A stretch of DNA of 32,000 nt, from positions 120,001 to 152,000 of the forward strand of contig AJ010592.2 of assembly GCA_000002975.1 (NCBI GenBank), in the 5' to 3' direction. Of the stretch, positions 5,674 to 20,298 are shown piece after piece. The translations under genes and the position numbers were made by a program. The stretch is from Guillardia theta nucleomorph (taxonomy: Eukaryota > Protista > Cryptophyta). Each line of letters opens with the position of its first letter. The stretch's first letter is position 1. The notes under the pieces were generated by a model, which saw only the letters and a list, made by a program, of their open reading frames with translations, was not told where the DNA came from and ran no database searches.

Positions 5674-8259
5674 TCAATTTTTATCACCATAAATATATTT
5701 TTTATTACAAATTAAGGTTTTTTTGATTTCAAAACTTTTCCTTAATATTAATTCGTAGCTTGAATCAAATATTCTAAAAATTCCATAACTGATAAATTCT
5801 TCAAAAGAATTTAAATGATCGGAGAAGTTCAATATTAAATTAAAAATTTGTAAGATCAGTAAAACATAGATTTGTTTAAATTTCCTATAAGGCTTATCAG
5901 ATAGAAAATGAGATTTTCCTTTGAGATTTAACAAGCATTGAGCAAAACGAATAAAAAAAAATATTTTTTCAAATTTGTAAATAAAGTCTGTAGAATTTAT
6001 TTTCAAACTTTTAATATAATTTAAATTATTATTGCCTAATTCGAATAAAATTAAATCACTAAAGCATTCTAATGAATTATTAATCTTTTTATTGCCTGAA
6101 CCAGCACCAATCATCCCGAGTGAGAATATTACGATATTAATGATATCTGAATTGTAGTATTTTAAGTTTTTAATAAGACAATTAATTATCGAGGAATTTG
6201 ACCTATGATCTTTAATCAAAGAACTGAAAATCATGGGTAAGACCTTTTGTTCAATCTGAGAATTTTCTATTATAAGCTCAAACATTTTAATTAAATTATT
6301 CGATAAAGATTTGTTTCTAAATAATATAAAAAAAATTCCTATGTATGAAATTTCTAGTCTTAATTTATAAAAAAAATTATTATCAATGTGACTAATACTT
6401 TTAATTTTTCTTATATTAATACATTTATTCTGTTGCTTATATTTTCCTTTATTTGATGTAATACTATCTTTATAGTTAAAAGATTTGATAAAATCAGTTT
6501 CGAAAATAGTTTTGAGAATGAAATTGCATAATTTAGGATTATAATAATTGAAATTTAAAAATATAATAGATGCATAGATTGATATATTTTTTATTATTTT
6601 ATTTTTAATATTAAACACTTCATAAAATTTGGTTTTAAAACATTTTTTGATTACTAGAAAAATTGAACCAGTACTTAATATCATTGCTGATAATGTTTTT
6701 TGAATATTTTCTTCAAATAATATAGATTGAGAAATATTTTCATTAATGTATTTAACTGATTTTTCGATTAAATAGGAATTATTATCATAAAATTTATTTC
6801 TAAAGGAATCAAAAATTATATTGACTTGTAGTTTAATTGAAGATAAAAAATATCTATTAAGATATTTAACAAGAGAAGATTCAAAATTTAAATTACAAAA
6901 AAGAATCACAGAGTTAGAATTAATAATTGAATTGTAAAATTTAAAGATATTCATGAAATCATCTATTTGTATAATGTATTCAGCTGTAGTTAAATTTTTA
7001 CAGATGACTAGGAAATTACACATAATTTTTTTGTAAATTTTATAGTTAAAATATTTTTTAATGATAGAAGAATAGATAGAATTAATCATATAAAAATGTA
7101 TTTTAAAAATATTTTCTGGAAACATATCCGAAAAAAGAATACCAATTACGGAGTAAGAATCTAACTCCGTGGAAGTATTTTTTTTTTTGTTATTTGATCT
7201 AAATGATTCAATAATTTTAGAAATCAATTTGCATATATTTTTGAAACTCATAGACCAAAGGACAATATATTTATCAACTAAAAAATTATAAGAAAAAATT
7301 TGTTCAAAGAATTGAGTTTCATTTTTTTCTATAATATTGTAATTGATAAATTTTAATAAATTTTCTGAAATCTCTTTGGTATTAATTAGTTTTTTCATTG
7401 AATTTAATTCTATTTTATGAATAATTTTGTTTTTATCAAAAGATGTAATGTTTGAAGAATTCGTTCTATATTGATTTATATCCGTGATAGTTTTGATTTT
7501 TATCAATTTTAGTAAAACAAAATTGTGTAAATTTGATTTAAATTTATTGATCCATTTTACTTTATTTTGTATTTCAACATGATTGAGTTGACTTGAGAAA
7601 AGTTTAGTTGAAAAATGCTTTAAATTATGAAAAAGATTTAAAACTTTAATGTTTATACACTTTTTTGATAAAATTGTTTTATTTTTAAACAATAAATTTT
7701 TTTGATTACATTTTTTTTTTAATAGGTATGATATTGGATGAAGCTTATAAGCATCCAAAAATATTTTTATTTTTTTTTCAGCGATAAAATCTAAATTGTC
7801 TTTTAGAATATCCACAATTGAAGCAAAGTTTTCTATCAAAAGAAATGATTTGAAAACAAAAGGATGAAATTTAAATAAGTCAACTGAAAATATTTTAAAA
7901 TACGAGAAGATATTTTTTTTTTTACAAAAATTTTTGTTGTAAATCAGTAAATAATATTTTATTAACGAAAGATCATTAGAAGAAAACTTTTCATTGGATA
8001 AAATAAGATTATTAGATAAAGTATGAGTAAAAGAAATTTCCAGTATTAGTTTAAAATCATTGTGAAGTATGTTATATTGATTAAAACATTTTTTGTGATT
8101 TATTATCATTTTTGTGAAATAATATTCATCAAAATCTTTAACTTTTTTAATATCACAATTTTTTTTTTGTATATATCTAATATTTATCCCACCCATTATA
8201 ACAAAAATAGAATAAAATATATTTTTATTTTTATAAGATTGATTATTTTTAAACAACAT
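5674..8259 (-). CDS. rpn1: Highly divergent 26S proteasome non-ATPase subunit Rpn1 (PSMD2-like)
   Basis: The C-terminal segments NIVIFSLGMIGAGSGNKKI and FFIRFAQCLLNLKGK resemble Rpn1 IFAMGMVGSGTNNAR and FMVRLAQGLTHLGKG. Length is similar to Rpn1; the rest is low complexity. Confidence 0.7.
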   Translation of the reverse strand: MLFKNNQSYKNKNIFYSIFVIMGGINIRYIQKKNCDIKKVKDFDEYYFTKMIINHKKCFNQYNILHNDFKLILEISFTHTLSNNLILSNEKFSSNDLSLIKYYLLIYNKNFCKKKNIFSYFKIFSVDLFKFHPFVFKSFLLIENFASIVDILKDNLDFIAEKKIKIFLDAYKLHPISYLLKKKCNQKNLLFKNKTILSKKCINIKVLNLFHNLKHFSTKLFSSQLNHVEIQNKVKWINKFKSNLHNFVLLKLIKIKTITDINQYRTNSSNITSFDKNKIIHKIELNSMKKLINTKEISENLLKFINYNIIEKNETQFFEQIFSYNFLVDKYIVLWSMSFKNICKLISKIIESFRSNNKKKNTSTELDSYSVIGILFSDMFPENIFKIHFYMINSIYSSIIKKYFNYKIYKKIMCNFLVICKNLTTAEYIIQIDDFMNIFKFYNSIINSNSVILFCNLNFESSLVKYLNRYFLSSIKLQVNIIFDSFRNKFYDNNSYLIEKSVKYINENISQSILFEENIQKTLSAMILSTGSIFLVIKKCFKTKFYEVFNIKNKIIKNISIYASIIFLNFNYYNPKLCNFILKTIFETDFIKSFNYKDSITSNKGKYKQQNKCINIRKIKSISHIDNNFFYKLRLEISYIGIFFILFRNKSLSNNLIKMFELIIENSQIEQKVLPMIFSSLIKDHRSNSSIINCLIKNLKYYNSDIINIVIFSLGMIGAGSGNKKINNSLECFSDLILFELGNNNLNYIKSLKINSTDFIYKFEKIFFFIRFAQCLLNLKGKSHFLSDKPYRKFKQIYVLLILQIFNLILNFSDHLNSFEEFISYGIFRIFDSSYELILRKSFEIKKTLICNKKYIYGDKN

Positions 8260-8452: not shown

Positions 8453-9265
8453 ATGTCTATATTCAATGCACTGGTAATACCAAAAATATGTAACGCAGTC
8501 TTAAAATCATATCAAAATTCATGGCCGAGAGATTTACTGAAAATTTACACATGTTCTCCTTTAGATTTTCACGCTCAAACCATGAATTGGGACTGTGGCT
8601 ATAGAAATATGCAAACTATGCTGTCTTCTTACTTGAATCACGATTCATCGGTAAGAGATCAATTATTTTCATCAGGAATTATTACGATACCTACATTAAA
8701 AGAACTTCAAAGGTTAATTGAAAGAGCTTGGACAAAAGGATACGATCAAATAGGAGGAATGCAATTAGATTATTCTCTTTATGACACAAATAAATGGATT
8801 GGAGCAACAGAAGTCGTTGCGATGTTACGATCTTGTAAGGTTAGAGCATGTGTTGCAGATTTCGACTTCACTAGCGGTCATTGTGATTTAAATACAATGG
8901 TCAGAGTTGTTTGGGAGTATTTTGAAAGCCGAAATTTATTATCACAAGATGATAATATTTTCATTGCTCCACTATACCTACAGCATCAAGGGCATTCCAG
9001 ACTGATTCTTGGTGTTGAAAAATGGGCGAATGGAGATATTAAACTATTGATATTAGATCCTCAGATGAGAAGAGCAATACAATTTCATCAAAGAGTTGGC
9101 GATGAAGCAAATATTCTCAGACAAGGTGTGAGTACACATGGTTTAAATTCTAAATCAAAATATCAAATTGCATATTTATCCGAAAAAAATATTTATAATC
9201 AAGAGATGGAACACTCGAAGATAATTGTAGATGAATTAAGACACCCTAAGTTAAAATTTATTTAA
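8453..9265 (+). CDS. ZUFSP/ZUP1-Mug105 family (peptidase C78) cysteine protease or deubiquitinase, catalytic domain only
   Basis: WDCGYRNMQ (Cys48), LQRLIERAWTKGYD, KWIGATE, PLYLQHQGHSR (His181), LLILDP (Asp202). Confidence 0.88.
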   Translation: MSIFNALVIPKICNAVLKSYQNSWPRDLLKIYTCSPLDFHAQTMNWDCGYRNMQTMLSSYLNHDSSVRDQLFSSGIITIPTLKELQRLIERAWTKGYDQIGGMQLDYSLYDTNKWIGATEVVAMLRSCKVRACVADFDFTSGHCDLNTMVRVVWEYFESRNLLSQDDNIFIAPLYLQHQGHSRLILGVEKWANGDIKLLILDPQMRRAIQFHQRVGDEANILRQGVSTHGLNSKSKYQIAYLSEKNIYNQEMEHSKIIVDELRHPKLKFI

Positions 9266-11400: not shown

Positions 11401-12288
11401 TTAAAAAAAAGAATAAAAAAATTTCAATGCCTCAGTTGATTTTAATCTTTTTTTAGGATCATAAACAAGAATCTTCTGTAGTAAAAATATTAAATTTTTG
11501 TTTGTTTTTGACTCGAGTTTTAAGTTTAATTTATTGTAAGGTTGTATAGGAAAAACTATGTTTTTAGTAAATTTTAAAGTATGTAAATTTAACCAAATTT
11601 CTGTGGTAGGAGTTCCAATAGTCTGAAAAATTTTATTTAATTGATCTAACTCAGATTTGCCTTGAAATAAAATTTCTCCTGTAATCAATTCTCCTATAAC
11701 ACAACCAAATGACCACATATCTACTGAATAATCATAAAAATGTTGACCTAATAATATTTCTGGAGCTCTGTACCATAATGTGACGATTTTATCAGATAGA
11801 CATATTTTTTTACTACATAAGAAGGTTCCCATCCCAAAGTCACATATTTTTACGATTCCTAATCTATTAATCAATATATTGCTCGATTTTAAATCTCTAT
11901 GAATTATTTTGTTCAGATGAAGATAAACAATAGAATTTAAAAGTTGCAATCCTATGAATAAAATCTGGTTTGTGGAAATTTTTATTTTATTTTCTATTAG
12001 ATTTCTTAAATTTAATTCACAGAAATCCATAATTAAAGAAATTTTATCTTCATTTTTTGAATATAAGAAGTTTTGCAAGAATATTAAATTTGGATGAAAT
12101 ATATATGATAAAAATCTAACTTCACTTATGTATTCTTTTTTAAGTGAATTATTTGAGTAATAAATTTCAATTTCTTTACAGGCACATTTTTTAATTTTCA
12201 TTTTCATCATTTCAAATACTTTACCATATGTTCCGTAGTCAATTAATTTTTTTTTTATATACTTAATTCCTCTTTCAATTGTAAACAT
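11401..12288 (-). CDS. Cyclin-dependent (cdc2-related) Ser/Thr kinase, most like the CDK10/CDK11 group
   Basis: GTYGKV, HRDLKSSNIL, KICDFG, VTLWYRAPEILLG, DMWSFGC, GKSELDQLNKIF. Confidence 0.88.
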   Translation of the reverse strand: MFTIERGIKYIKKKLIDYGTYGKVFEMMKMKIKKCACKEIEIYYSNNSLKKEYISEVRFLSYIFHPNLIFLQNFLYSKNEDKISLIMDFCELNLRNLIENKIKISTNQILFIGLQLLNSIVYLHLNKIIHRDLKSSNILINRLGIVKICDFGMGTFLCSKKICLSDKIVTLWYRAPEILLGQHFYDYSVDMWSFGCVIGELITGEILFQGKSELDQLNKIFQTIGTPTTEIWLNLHTLKFTKNIVFPIQPYNKLNLKLESKTNKNLIFLLQKILVYDPKKRLKSTEALKFFYSFF

Positions 12289-12564
12289 CCGCGTACCTTG
12301 AATCTGTGTTTAAATTATATATTAAATAATTATGTTATTTAAAAAAAAAATATAAATTCACCTAAATGAGATAGTATGTCATTATTAATAAAAATACTTA
12401 AATCACTTTTTTTTTAATGAAGAATAATTAATGCATGAATTATATTTCTTAAATTATCTACAAATTTTACGATTAAACGACTAGTTTTCGTAATTAATAA
12501 ATTTGAAAATTTTCTTTAAAGTTATTAATGTTAAATTTTTGTTAATTTTTAACTTAATATTTTA

Positions 12565-12908
12565 ATGCATAGATTCAAAATTATTAATATTAGTATTAAT
12601 GGAGAAATTAGTTTATATTACGAGGTAAGTAGTAAATATTTTTTTTTTTATAAATAATGTTAATATAGAACGAAAAGTGTGCAATTTGTAGAAATAATCT
12701 TGAAGACAATGCTCCTGATTTCGAAGAAAGGGTCGGAAAACATTCGAAAAATTTTCTAGATCAAATATCTAAAAATTGTTTTTTAGCATATGGTCGTTGT
12801 GGACATTCTTTTCACTTAATTTGTATAGAAAATTGGATTATTCTTAATAAAAATTGCCCTTTATGTTCTAGAATATGGGTATATGAAAATATTAGGCTAA
12901 GTATTTAA
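12565..12908 (+). CDS. RING-box protein (Rbx1/Apc11 family RING-H2), spliced: exons 12565-12624 and 12669-12908, 99 aa; absent from the ORF track
   Basis: The spliced product is MHRFKIINISINGEISLYYE|NEKCAICRNNL...CFLAYGRCGHSFHLICIENWIILNKNCPLCSRIWVYENIRLSI*. It matches the Rbx1 pattern CAICRN...C-x-H-x-F-H-x-x-C...W...CPL. Confidence 0.9.
12625..12668 (+). other. 44-nt spliceosomal intron in the RING-box gene
   Basis: GAG|GTAAGTAG...T-run...GTTAATATAG|AAC, phase 0. The unspliced frame hits a TAA. Confidence 0.9.
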
Positions 12909-19023: not shown

Positions 19024-20001
19024 ATGATTGTCTTAAAGGAAATTAAGTTTATTAAAATATCTAAGAATTCAAGAATATTTAAAAATCATAAAGAAAGTTT
19101 TTTAAATTTAATAGAAAGCAAGTATGGAATACCATTCGTGTATAAAAATATTTCCAATAAATTATTTCATAAATTCTATATTTTACAAATTATATTATGC
19201 TTAGGTTTTTGTTTTATAAAATATCATTCTGATTTATTAAAAAAAATTAAGAAATATCATTTTACCTATTTTTGTTTTTTTAATTTTATTTCCAATCTTG
19301 ACGAAAAATTCAAAATAAAAAAAAATATTGAACTAAAAAAATTTATTTTAAAGAAAAATAAAAAGTTAAAATACAAAATTCTTTTTAAAAAATTAAATTT
19401 ATTTTTCAACTGTGTTTTGATAAAAAAAAATATTAAAAAAATCTTTAAGTCTCAAGGTTATATGACAAATAAATTTAACATAATTAATTGCTGTAGTTTA
19501 ATTAAAAATATGAAAATTTTGATTACAAAAATAGATAGAATGATAAATTTTACTTCTAAAAAATTGGTTTTATTATTTAAAATTTTAAAACATGTAATAT
19601 TAACAAATGAAAAAAAATCTAATTCTATGACTACTTTTTTATTTACCATGATTTCTACAAAAAATATAATTTATATATGTAGGATTTTAGTAGCATTTTA
19701 TGATATCAAATTGAAAATAATACAAAACAATAAAAAATTGATTTTTTCAATCAAAACTATTTGGATGATTAACGTATATGCATTGCATTTTTCATCAGAA
19801 TGTCAAAAGATTAATTTAAAAAAGATTTTACCAGAGAAAATTTATTTTAATGATTTTATAATTCTTTTCTGTTTAAAATTTTTAAAATTACGTAAATACA
19901 ATTTAAATAAATTATTTAAAAAAACTAACAATTTTACTCTAAAAAAATTAGTTAAATTATATTACACCTTTACGCTATTAAGAAATGTAAAATATTGTTA
20001 A
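19024..20001 (+). CDS. Hypothetical protein (325 aa, K/F/I/L-rich ORFan)
   Basis: Long ATG-initiated ORF; no motif recognised. Confidence 0.65.
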
Positions 20002-20024
20002 AGTTATTAGATACTGTAGTTTTA

Positions 20025-20219
20025 ATGAAATTTATTGATTATTATAGATTAAGGGGTGGAGCGTTAGACAGCGTTTCGATGAATATAGCGCGTAAAAAGC
20101 TTTGTGAAAAACTAGTATGCAGAAAATGTTACGCAAGAATGCATATAAAGGCACATAATTGCAGGAAAAAAAAATGTGGCCATTCAAATAAACTCAGATT
20201 AAAAAAAAAAATCAAATAA
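20025..20219 (+). CDS. rpl40: 60S ribosomal protein L40 (eL40) with a vestigial 12-aa leader ending in RLRGG instead of ubiquitin
   Basis: [12 protein letters not shown]|[52 protein letters not shown]. The first in-frame ATG is at 20025; the track's start at 19995 is a TTG. Confidence 0.93.
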
Positions 20220-20223
20220 TAAT

Positions 20224-20295
20224 GGCGCTATAGCTTAGTGGTAGAGCGTTGCACTAGTAATGCAAAGGTCATGAGTTCAACTCTCGTTAGTGCCT
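20224..20295 (+). tRNA. trnT(AGT): tRNA-Thr (anticodon AGT, 20256-20258)
   Basis: Acceptor GGCGCTA/TAGTGCC, D loop TAGTGGT, anticodon arm TTGCA-CTAGTAA-TGCAA, T loop TTCAACT. Confidence 0.96.
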
Positions 20296-20298
20296 CCT

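Follow-up and report, generated by a model that had tools for sequence, protein, structure and literature searches.

Why would a genome as small as that of a cryptophyte nucleomorph keep a cysteine deubiquitinating enzyme (DUB), and on what substrates would this enzyme act? The question is raised by orf270 (Gt2_270), a gene of the Guillardia theta nucleomorph that lies in a 32,000-nucleotide stretch of chromosome 2 (positions 120,001-152,000; hereafter the window, to which all coordinates refer unless one of the chromosomes C1 to C3 is named). The nucleomorph assembly comprises 551,264 bp in three contigs (196,216 + 180,915 + 174,133 bp), and the window is AT-rich with a GC content of 0.16-0.33 per kb. 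The identity of orf270 is not new: Zauner et al. 2019 (PMC6559170) described Gt2_270 as a ZUFSP homologue and putative deubiquitinating enzyme and left its function open, the machinery served being not predictable, and Hermanns et al. 2018 (PMC5824887) recorded ZUFSP members in Cryptophyta. New here are a census of DUB genes in the nucleomorph, the conservation of orf270, the decayed leaders of both eL40 and eS31 together with statistics on the eS31 leaders, and a predicted complex of orf270 with eL40. Our working hypothesis is that orf270 processes the eL40 and eS31 leaders, with or without an additional role in trimming conjugates, and we regard this hypothesis as evenly poised. As far as we searched, this enzyme-substrate relationship is unpublished, and no paper joining the terms 'nucleomorph' and 'ZUFSP' was found in the literature searched. 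The gene and its key residues are as follows.

8453..9265, + strand: orf270 (Gt2_270), core-only ZUFSP-family cysteine peptidase; ATG start, 270 aa, stop codon included.
8546..9169, + strand: Peptidase_C78 catalytic domain, residues 32-239 (Pfam envelope).
8594..8596, + strand: catalytic Cys48 (TGT), equivalent to human ZUP1 Cys360; read directly and mapped via the 6ei1 alignment; invariant.
8744..8746, + strand: Asp98 (KGYDQ), equivalent to ZUP1 Asp406 by alignment; by homology the predicted binder of ubiquitin Arg72 (role from PMC8776766).
8795..8812, + strand: Trp115-Glu120 (WIGATE); Trp115 equivalent to ZUP1 Trp423 (groove closing), Glu120 to ZUP1 Glu428 (ubiquitin Arg74 binding).
8987..8995, + strand: Gln179-Gly180-His181 (HQGH); His181 is the ZUFSP-type catalytic histidine, equivalent to ZUP1 His491, and Gln179 is equivalent to ZUP1 Gln489.
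9056..9064, + strand: Asp202-Pro203-Gln204 (LILDP); Asp202 is the catalytic aspartate, equivalent to ZUP1 Asp512, and Gln204 lies at the oxyanion-hole position.
9218..9262, + strand: C-terminal tail K256-I270, KIIVDELRHPKLKFI, delimited in alignment A1; the predicted local distance difference test score (pLDDT) is below 50 for residues 245-270.

A single Pfam domain, PF07910 Peptidase_C78, was found in orf270 (residues 32-239, E 7.3e-47, 160 bits at a cut-off of 29.1). When residues were counted along the HMMER alignment with human ZUFSP (6ei1, construct 232-578), Cys48, which sits in NWDCGYRN, fell on Cys360; the equivalences to Asp406, Trp423/Glu428, Gln489/His491 and Asp512 follow from the shared motifs GYD, WIGATE, QGH and LDP in the same alignment, and W115, Q204 and Q238 are likewise present. 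In alignment A1, which contains 20 sequences, 11 of them nucleomorph-type, and includes metazoan ZUP1, residues C48, D98, W115, E120, Q179 and H181 are invariant and D202 is found in at least 90% of the sequences. The ORF translation and this alignment place C48/H181/D202, D98, E120 and Q179 exactly where an earlier reading made from the DNA alone (hereafter the sequence-only reading) had put them. The AlphaFold2 model of orf270 has a mean pLDDT of 77.7 and a predicted template modelling score of 0.81, with pLDDT mostly 82-93 across the C78 domain and lower values at residues 41-50 (73), 161-170 (76) and 201-230 (44-68).

PF07910 is common to orf270 and the UFM1-specific proteases UFSP1 and UFSP2 (2Z84, 3OQC), which share with orf270 the papain-like C78 fold and a catalytic Cys and Asp at equivalent positions, and orthologues of orf270 are annotated as 'zinc finger with UFM1-specific peptidase domain protein'. 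Both points would suit orf270 being a UFM1-specific protease, or an inactive relic of one. Yet phmmer searches of the PDB with orf270 alone gave Tribolium TcZUP (2.6e-33), human ZUFSP (9.3e-32) and Mug105 of S. pombe (3.9e-21) and no UFSP at E < 1. The 20-sequence profile, which leans to metazoan ZUP1 since such sequences were included while the single-sequence search is unaffected, gave 5e-114 (TcZUP), 1.6e-105 (human ZUFSP) and 6.4e-40 (Mug105), as against UFSP values of 1.8e-4 to 1.8e-2 that are ~100 orders of magnitude weaker than those of ZUFSP. Foldseek with the orf270 model returned 7oje, 6ei1 and 6fge as best matches (E 1e-18 to 1e-15, query-normalised TM 0.70-0.74), followed by Mug105 (7oiy; 8e-13) and then the UFSPs (6e-9 and weaker). 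Human ZUP1/ZUFSP (6EI1, 6FGE) and TcZUP (7OJE) are, therefore, the best matches in both sequence and fold, and the motifs GCGYRN, KWIGA.E, LQHQGHS and LDP, which surround the catalytic and tail-binding residues, are given as identical between them and orf270, which at C48 reads NWDCGYRN. The position of the catalytic histidine also separates the two branches: in UFSP and ATG4 it comes just after the catalytic aspartate, while the ZUFSP one lies at the start of beta4 (PMC5824887). orf270 reads D202-P203-Q204, so that glutamine stands where a UFSP has the histidine of its D-P-H motif, and Q179-G-H181 supplies a ZUFSP-type histidine from a different strand. Moreover, no UFM1 (PF03671) match was found in the whole nucleomorph genome, although UFM1 may be imported. 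Based on the PDB searches, the histidine position and the lack of a UFM1 gene in the nucleomorph genome, we rejected the UFSP assignment, which we consider extremely improbable. The sequence-only reading had proposed a ZUFSP/Mug105-type enzyme as opposed to one of the UFSP1/2 type, and sequence, profile, fold and histidine position, together with the lone C78 domain, all agree with that proposal and assign orf270 to the ZUFSP branch of MEROPS family C78.

The predicted architecture of orf270 is core-only and Mug105-like, and not that of metazoan ZUP1. Neither Pfam nor alignments to ZUP1 detected a zinc finger, MIU, zUBD or alpha2/3 hairpin, i.e., the parts of ZUP1 that provide ubiquitin binding and K63 specificity. 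The alignment to the human ZUP1 core starts at orf270 residue 13, leaving 12 residues ahead of it, and columns 1-260 of alignment A1 are empty in the nucleomorph-type sequences except that of C. paramecium, which has a short N-terminal extension. With one Pfam domain and 12 preceding residues, there is none of the zinc-finger or ubiquitin-binding modules that the sequence-only reading had reported missing. Mug105 (7OIY) similarly consists of the catalytic domain alone; it shares with orf270 the arrangement of Cys, His and Asp as well as the clamp formed by Trp and Gln, and it has an acidic pair for the R-x-R of ubiquitin (D89/E109, corresponding to orf270 D98/E120); it cuts RLRGG-AMC and K48 chains (PMC8776766, PMC5824887). 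Unlike Mug105, orf270 is nearer in sequence to metazoan ZUP1 cores (the phmmer values of 2.6e-33 vs 3.9e-21 given above), has Gln204 in place of Mug105 Asp185, carries an extra C-terminal tail, and is nucleomorph-encoded. This architecture bears on the possibility that orf270 acts in the nucleomorph on chromatin, replication or repair, trimming ubiquitin chains on DNA-bound proteins as ZUP1 does with RPA at lesions. Human ZUFSP binds RPA and is transiently drawn to sites of DNA damage (PMC5824887), and the downstream neighbour of orf270 is a Upf1/Sen1-type helicase conserved in three nucleomorph genomes. However, the modules on which the K63 specificity of ZUP1 depends (zinc fingers, MIU and zUBD) are missing from orf270, and the helicase carries no functional weight because nucleomorph gene order is conserved in general. 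We therefore consider a chromatin role improbable.

By its conservation, orf270 is among the most constrained proteins of its neighbourhood and under strong purifying selection. It is 73.7% identical to its C. paramecium orthologue, as compared with 77.4% for Cpn60, 60.6% for GidA, 44.9% for a tRNA synthetase and 39.8% for the helicase in the same syntenic block, and the 861-aa upstream ORF (5674-8259, - strand) has no BLAST-detectable similarity to the syntenic 930-aa C. paramecium ORF and no Pfam match at E up to 0.01. Among the 20 ORFs of the window, orf270 has the highest GC content (0.331; the poorest have ~0.16-0.19) and the lowest fraction of K+N+I+F+Y (0.27; others reach up to 0.59), and these two measures of AT-driven bias substantiate the impression of the sequence-only reading that the protein is less eroded than its neighbours. 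Orthologues in other cryptomonads, found in the C. paramecium and Chroomonas mesostigmatica nucleomorphs and in Cryptomonas curvata, are 54-83% identical, and each of the four genomes described in PMC6559170 has an orthologue. Because several of the cryptomonad orthologues are complete MMETSP transcripts, the gene is expressed in relatives. A pseudoenzyme or relic was rejected because every catalytic residue is kept and identity across genera is 74-83%.

We next consider which ubiquitin system surrounds orf270. The census consisted of six-frame family searches over the whole nucleomorph genome. No ubiquitin domain (PF00240) was found in the 551 kb, in agreement with a 2025 SELMA (symbiont-specific ERAD-like machinery) phylogeny according to which the ubiquitin-like protein used by G. 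theta is encoded in the nucleus and carries a targeting signal. The census returned one C78 gene, two JAB/MPN genes and seven matches to ubiquitin-conjugating enzymes (E2) but no USP (PF00443), UCH or OTU; these last absences are weaker because the built-in controls were silent. That the E2 genes and both ribosomal families were found shows that the search method works in this genome. In the 551-kb nucleomorph, C78 is, thus, the single family of cysteine DUBs that the census detected, and the conjugation machinery is well represented although ubiquitin itself is not nucleomorph-encoded. Because E2s, MPN proteins and, in the window, a proteasome-type AAA ATPase are encoded, we suggest that the periplastid ubiquitin system runs on imported ubiquitin.

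These genes also bring in the strongest alternative to leader processing, namely that orf270 is a conventional periplastid ubiquitin isopeptidase only, acting on SELMA preproteins and/or in K48 recycling at the 26S proteasome, while the leaders are cut by another imported protease or remain uncut. In diatoms, ptDUP is the proposed SELMA deubiquitinase; it would work in the same compartment as orf270, possibly doing an equivalent job on imported preproteins. Unlike orf270, ptDUP is a nucleus-encoded USP/C19 enzyme that is not present in cryptophytes, an absence that two papers find surprising or unsolved and for which they expect an alternative enzyme (PMC12412216, PMC5756292). An encoded ubiquitin system running on imported ubiquitin and the activity of core-only Mug105 on K48 chains (PMC5824887) are both in line with such an isopeptidase. 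We regard an isopeptidase-only role as a serious possibility that falls short of probable; what it leaves unexplained is described in the following.

The proposed substrate encoded in the window is the precursor of eL40.

20025..20219, + strand: eL40 precursor (64 aa), a 12-aa leader followed by eL40 (PF01020, E 2.5e-19), proposed substrate.
20046..20060, + strand: R-L-R-G-G codons of the eL40 leader; cleavage is proposed C-terminal to Gly12, between 20060 and 20061.

The RLRGG-coding DNA pattern occurs at one site in the 551-kb genome while the backwards control pattern matched 3 times; for this reason the argument rests on the position of RLRGG at the eL40 junction and not on its rarity. In a scan for LRGG junctions over chromosome 1 and the window (228 kb), eL40 was the only junction-type match. 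The other LRGG-like strings belong to a duplicated 110-aa ORF or lie inside larger proteins, which from their flanking sequences appear to be chaperonin-, proteasome-subunit- and GTPase-like. The second decayed leader belongs to eS31, encoded on chromosome 3 (C3:46366-46713) by an ORF corresponding with 100% identity to '40S ribosomal protein S27A (nucleomorph)'. Its 44-aa leader ends in FLRGG directly before GKKRKKK and aligns loosely to ubiquitin residues 40-76, being far too short for a ubiquitin fold. In C. mesostigmatica, eL40 starts with MMNLRGG followed by IIEP.

To describe what is conserved in such leaders, we took from the eS31 search all precursors whose leader is 20 aa or longer and contains nothing recognisable as a ubiquitin motif, which gave 48 distinct sequences. 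Among them are those of Cryptomonas curvata and of the nucleomorphs of C. mesostigmatica and G. theta; the remainder was picked for similarity to G. theta eS31. Leader length ranges from 23 to 93 aa. Gly occupies P1 and P2 in 48/48 precursors each, Arg is found at P3 in 35/48 (Lys in 3 and Ile in 5), Leu at P4 in 43/48, and P5 is essentially random with an entropy of 3.3 bits. Mean pairwise identity is 0.11 over P5-P20 vs 0.66 over the first 40 mature residues. Conservation restricted to L-R-G-G is the pattern expected if selection acts on a cleavage signal located in the tail only. By contrast, an isopeptidase-only role does not explain why only L-R-G-G is conserved in leaders that do not fold, nor which enzyme cuts them. 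The arrangement resembles canonical ubiquitin-eL40 and ubiquitin-eS31 precursors in that an N-terminal extension ending in GG, here proposed to be removed, is attached to the same two ribosomal proteins; in yeast, uncleaved ubiquitin-eL40 harms 60S function. Unlike in canonical precursors, the nucleomorph extensions are no longer ubiquitin (7-93 aa, 0.11 pairwise identity) and their processing would yield no usable ubiquitin. Because the leader is no longer ubiquitin, recognition must rest on the L-R-G-G tail alone.

Recognition of this kind matches the known biochemistry of the family. Hermanns et al. 2022 (PMC8776766) found that RLRGG-AMC was cleaved far more rapidly than Ub-AMC by every ZUFSP enzyme tested, and ZUFSP enzymes are reported to cut RLRGG peptide and truncated ubiquitin; the sequence-only reading had also named this peptide cleavage. 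Conventional DUBs of other classes depend on an S1 ubiquitin that is folded (PMC8776766), a further point against assigning orf270 the role of an ordinary isopeptidase only. Because ZUFSP cores need no folded ubiquitin, orf270 could remove decayed ubiquitin leaders.

In the predicted complex of orf270 with the 64-aa eL40 precursor, the interface score ipSAE was 0.71 (0.68, 0.79 and 0.71 in three runs) and the best control reached 0.06; the calibration mark of this score was attained by 51/78 solved complexes and 2/108 mismatched pairs. The runs share at least 75% of their contacts, and the pLDDT of the partner is at least 65. In the model, the eL40 RLRGG (residues 8-12) lies on W115-E120, Q177-H181 and Q238, and the lowest-error contacts are those of Leu9, Arg10 and Gly11 with W115-E120, Q177-G180 and Y236-Q238. 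Specifically, residues 115-120 contact eL40 residues 9-11, with Glu120 and Trp115 contacting Arg10, at expected errors of 0.9-1.5 A, and the residues just past the proposed cut lie near H181 and D202. The modelled eL40 tail appears to adopt the same register as the ubiquitin tail in ZUP1 structures. We take the score to indicate likeness to ZUFSP-ubiquitin structures rather than binding.

In the mechanism that we propose, orf270 would be an active core-only ZUFSP cysteine deubiquitinase synthesised in the periplastid compartment, which is what is left of the cytoplasm of the red-algal endosymbiont; we infer this location because the gene is nucleomorph-encoded and nothing extends the N-terminus past the folded core. 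Its cleft would hold an extended L-R-G-G tail, with Glu120 pairing with the Arg74-equivalent and Asp98 with the Arg72-equivalent, while Trp115 and Gln179 would close over the Gly-Gly and Cys48/His181/Asp202 would cut after the second glycine. Leaders would thereby be removed from eL40 (12 aa, RLRGG) and eS31 (44 aa, FLRGG), freeing the normal N-termini for ribosome assembly. orf270 may also still act on genuine imported ubiquitin, e.g., on SELMA cargo or at the periplastid proteasome, because Asp98, the Arg72 binder, is invariant even though most eS31 leaders have lost the matching arginine. The same invariance can be read in favour of an isopeptidase-only role, since it points to real ubiquitin. 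A SELMA or proteasome role is at least as natural as leader processing and a strong rival to it; the two are not mutually exclusive. Of the interpretation in the sequence-only reading, the ZUFSP family, the core-only architecture and the intact residues stand, and the pairing with eL40 has become more plausible through the eS31 leader, the L-R-G-G pattern, the DUB census and the model; a role in SELMA import or at the proteasome fits equally well.

Several points weigh against leader processing by orf270. First, the complex score may reflect memory of solved ZUFSP-ubiquitin structures, and it is uncalibrated for peptides and disordered chains. Second, nucleus-encoded DUBs imported into the compartment could carry out the cleavage instead. 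Third, G. theta eL40 has an internal Met19 that is a possible alternative start. RNA depth over eL40 rises from ~6 to 25 to 96 across 19972-20103, the leader having ~1/4 of the downstream depth, and no clear 5' end was called from the reads in this interval; the reads, which are not decisive, are compatible with a leader that is present in the mRNA and with a 5' end shortly before the first ATG. Fourth, some eS31 leaders end in L-I-G-G and have no arginine for Glu120. Fifth, Giardia ribosomes keep an uncleaved ubiquitin-like eS31 (PMC8122580), demonstrating that cleavage is not a universal necessity. Finally, enzyme and leaders are both present in every cryptomonad nucleomorph examined, so that the co-retention which the sequence-only reading had named as a check comes without any negative case to serve as a control.

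Three questions meet at this enzyme: the preference of ZUFSP enzymes for bare RLRGG, the identity of the SELMA deubiquitinase of cryptophytes, and the retention of LRGG-tipped eL40 and eS31 leaders after decay of their ubiquitin, for which no explanation was found in the literature searched. With a predicted soluble enzyme of 270 aa and two short substrates, all three are open to standard assays. We speculate that a ZUFSP core reading only the tail, as the sole resident cysteine DUB, let the ubiquitin of eL40 and eS31 decay to leaders that have no structure but continue to be cut (a 'ubiquitin fusion without ubiquitin'), and that this enzyme also stands in for ptDUP during SELMA import in cryptophytes. 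If so, this would be the first physiological role assigned to the RLRGG-peptide activity of the ZUFSP family; taken as a whole, the scenario is doubtful. If the pairing holds, the specificity of the last surviving enzyme would shape what may decay in a shrinking genome.

Two further features of orf270 are characteristic of the nucleomorph-type sequences. LDPQ, with Gln204 at the oxyanion position, is present in 11/11 such sequences of alignment A1, while relatives have Ser (TcZUP), Gly (human ZUP1) or Asp (Mug105) at this position (PMC8776766). Gln204 (9062-9064) corresponds to the residue that tunes kcat in ZUP1 (Gly514) and TcZUP (Ser528), and papain likewise has Gln; by this comparison, Gln204 may mark a high-turnover enzyme. 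In the tail KIIVDELRHPKLKFI, a KIIVDEL(R/K) core is conserved in 11/11 nucleomorph-type sequences and an HP-basic-L end in 8/11, and Chroomonas-type orthologues have ~100 extra residues beyond this conserved tail. Conserved yet predicted to be disordered, the tail may be a short docking motif for a partner.

As for the leaders, the NCBI record 'ubiquitin (nucleomorph) [Chroomonas mesostigmatica]' is not ubiquitin but a 59-aa eL40 with the 7-aa stub MMNLRGG, and reports of nucleomorph-encoded ubiquitin in C. mesostigmatica may rest on that label. Several eS31 proteins open with the 7-aa stub MLRLRGG directly before GKKRKKK, one of them on a 498-kb contig; either ubiquitin was trimmed in other lineages too or these are truncated gene models. 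The duplicated 110-aa ORF with an LRGG-like string starts with MKNIKGGKTRAGKPKK and is present in identical copies near both ends of chromosome 1 (C1:9177-9509(+), 186708-187040(-)).

The gene neighbourhood, with a proteasome-like ORF upstream and the helicase downstream, was rejected as functional evidence because nucleomorph synteny is general and because the upstream ORF has neither a Pfam match nor detectable similarity to its C. paramecium counterpart. The remaining features are a tRNA gene next to eL40 and the repeated E2 gene.

20224-20297, + strand: tRNA-Thr (AGT) gene, beginning 4 bases past the eL40 stop codon.
C1, C2 and C3 at 12276-12686, C2:168230-168640 and C3:161448-161858: identical E2 copies in subtelomeric repeats.

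eL40 and tRNA-Thr are probably co-transcribed, which complicates the reading of the eL40 transcript end. The E2 gene (UQ_con, 183 bits) is present in five identical subtelomeric-repeat copies, in addition to two further single-copy E2 genes.

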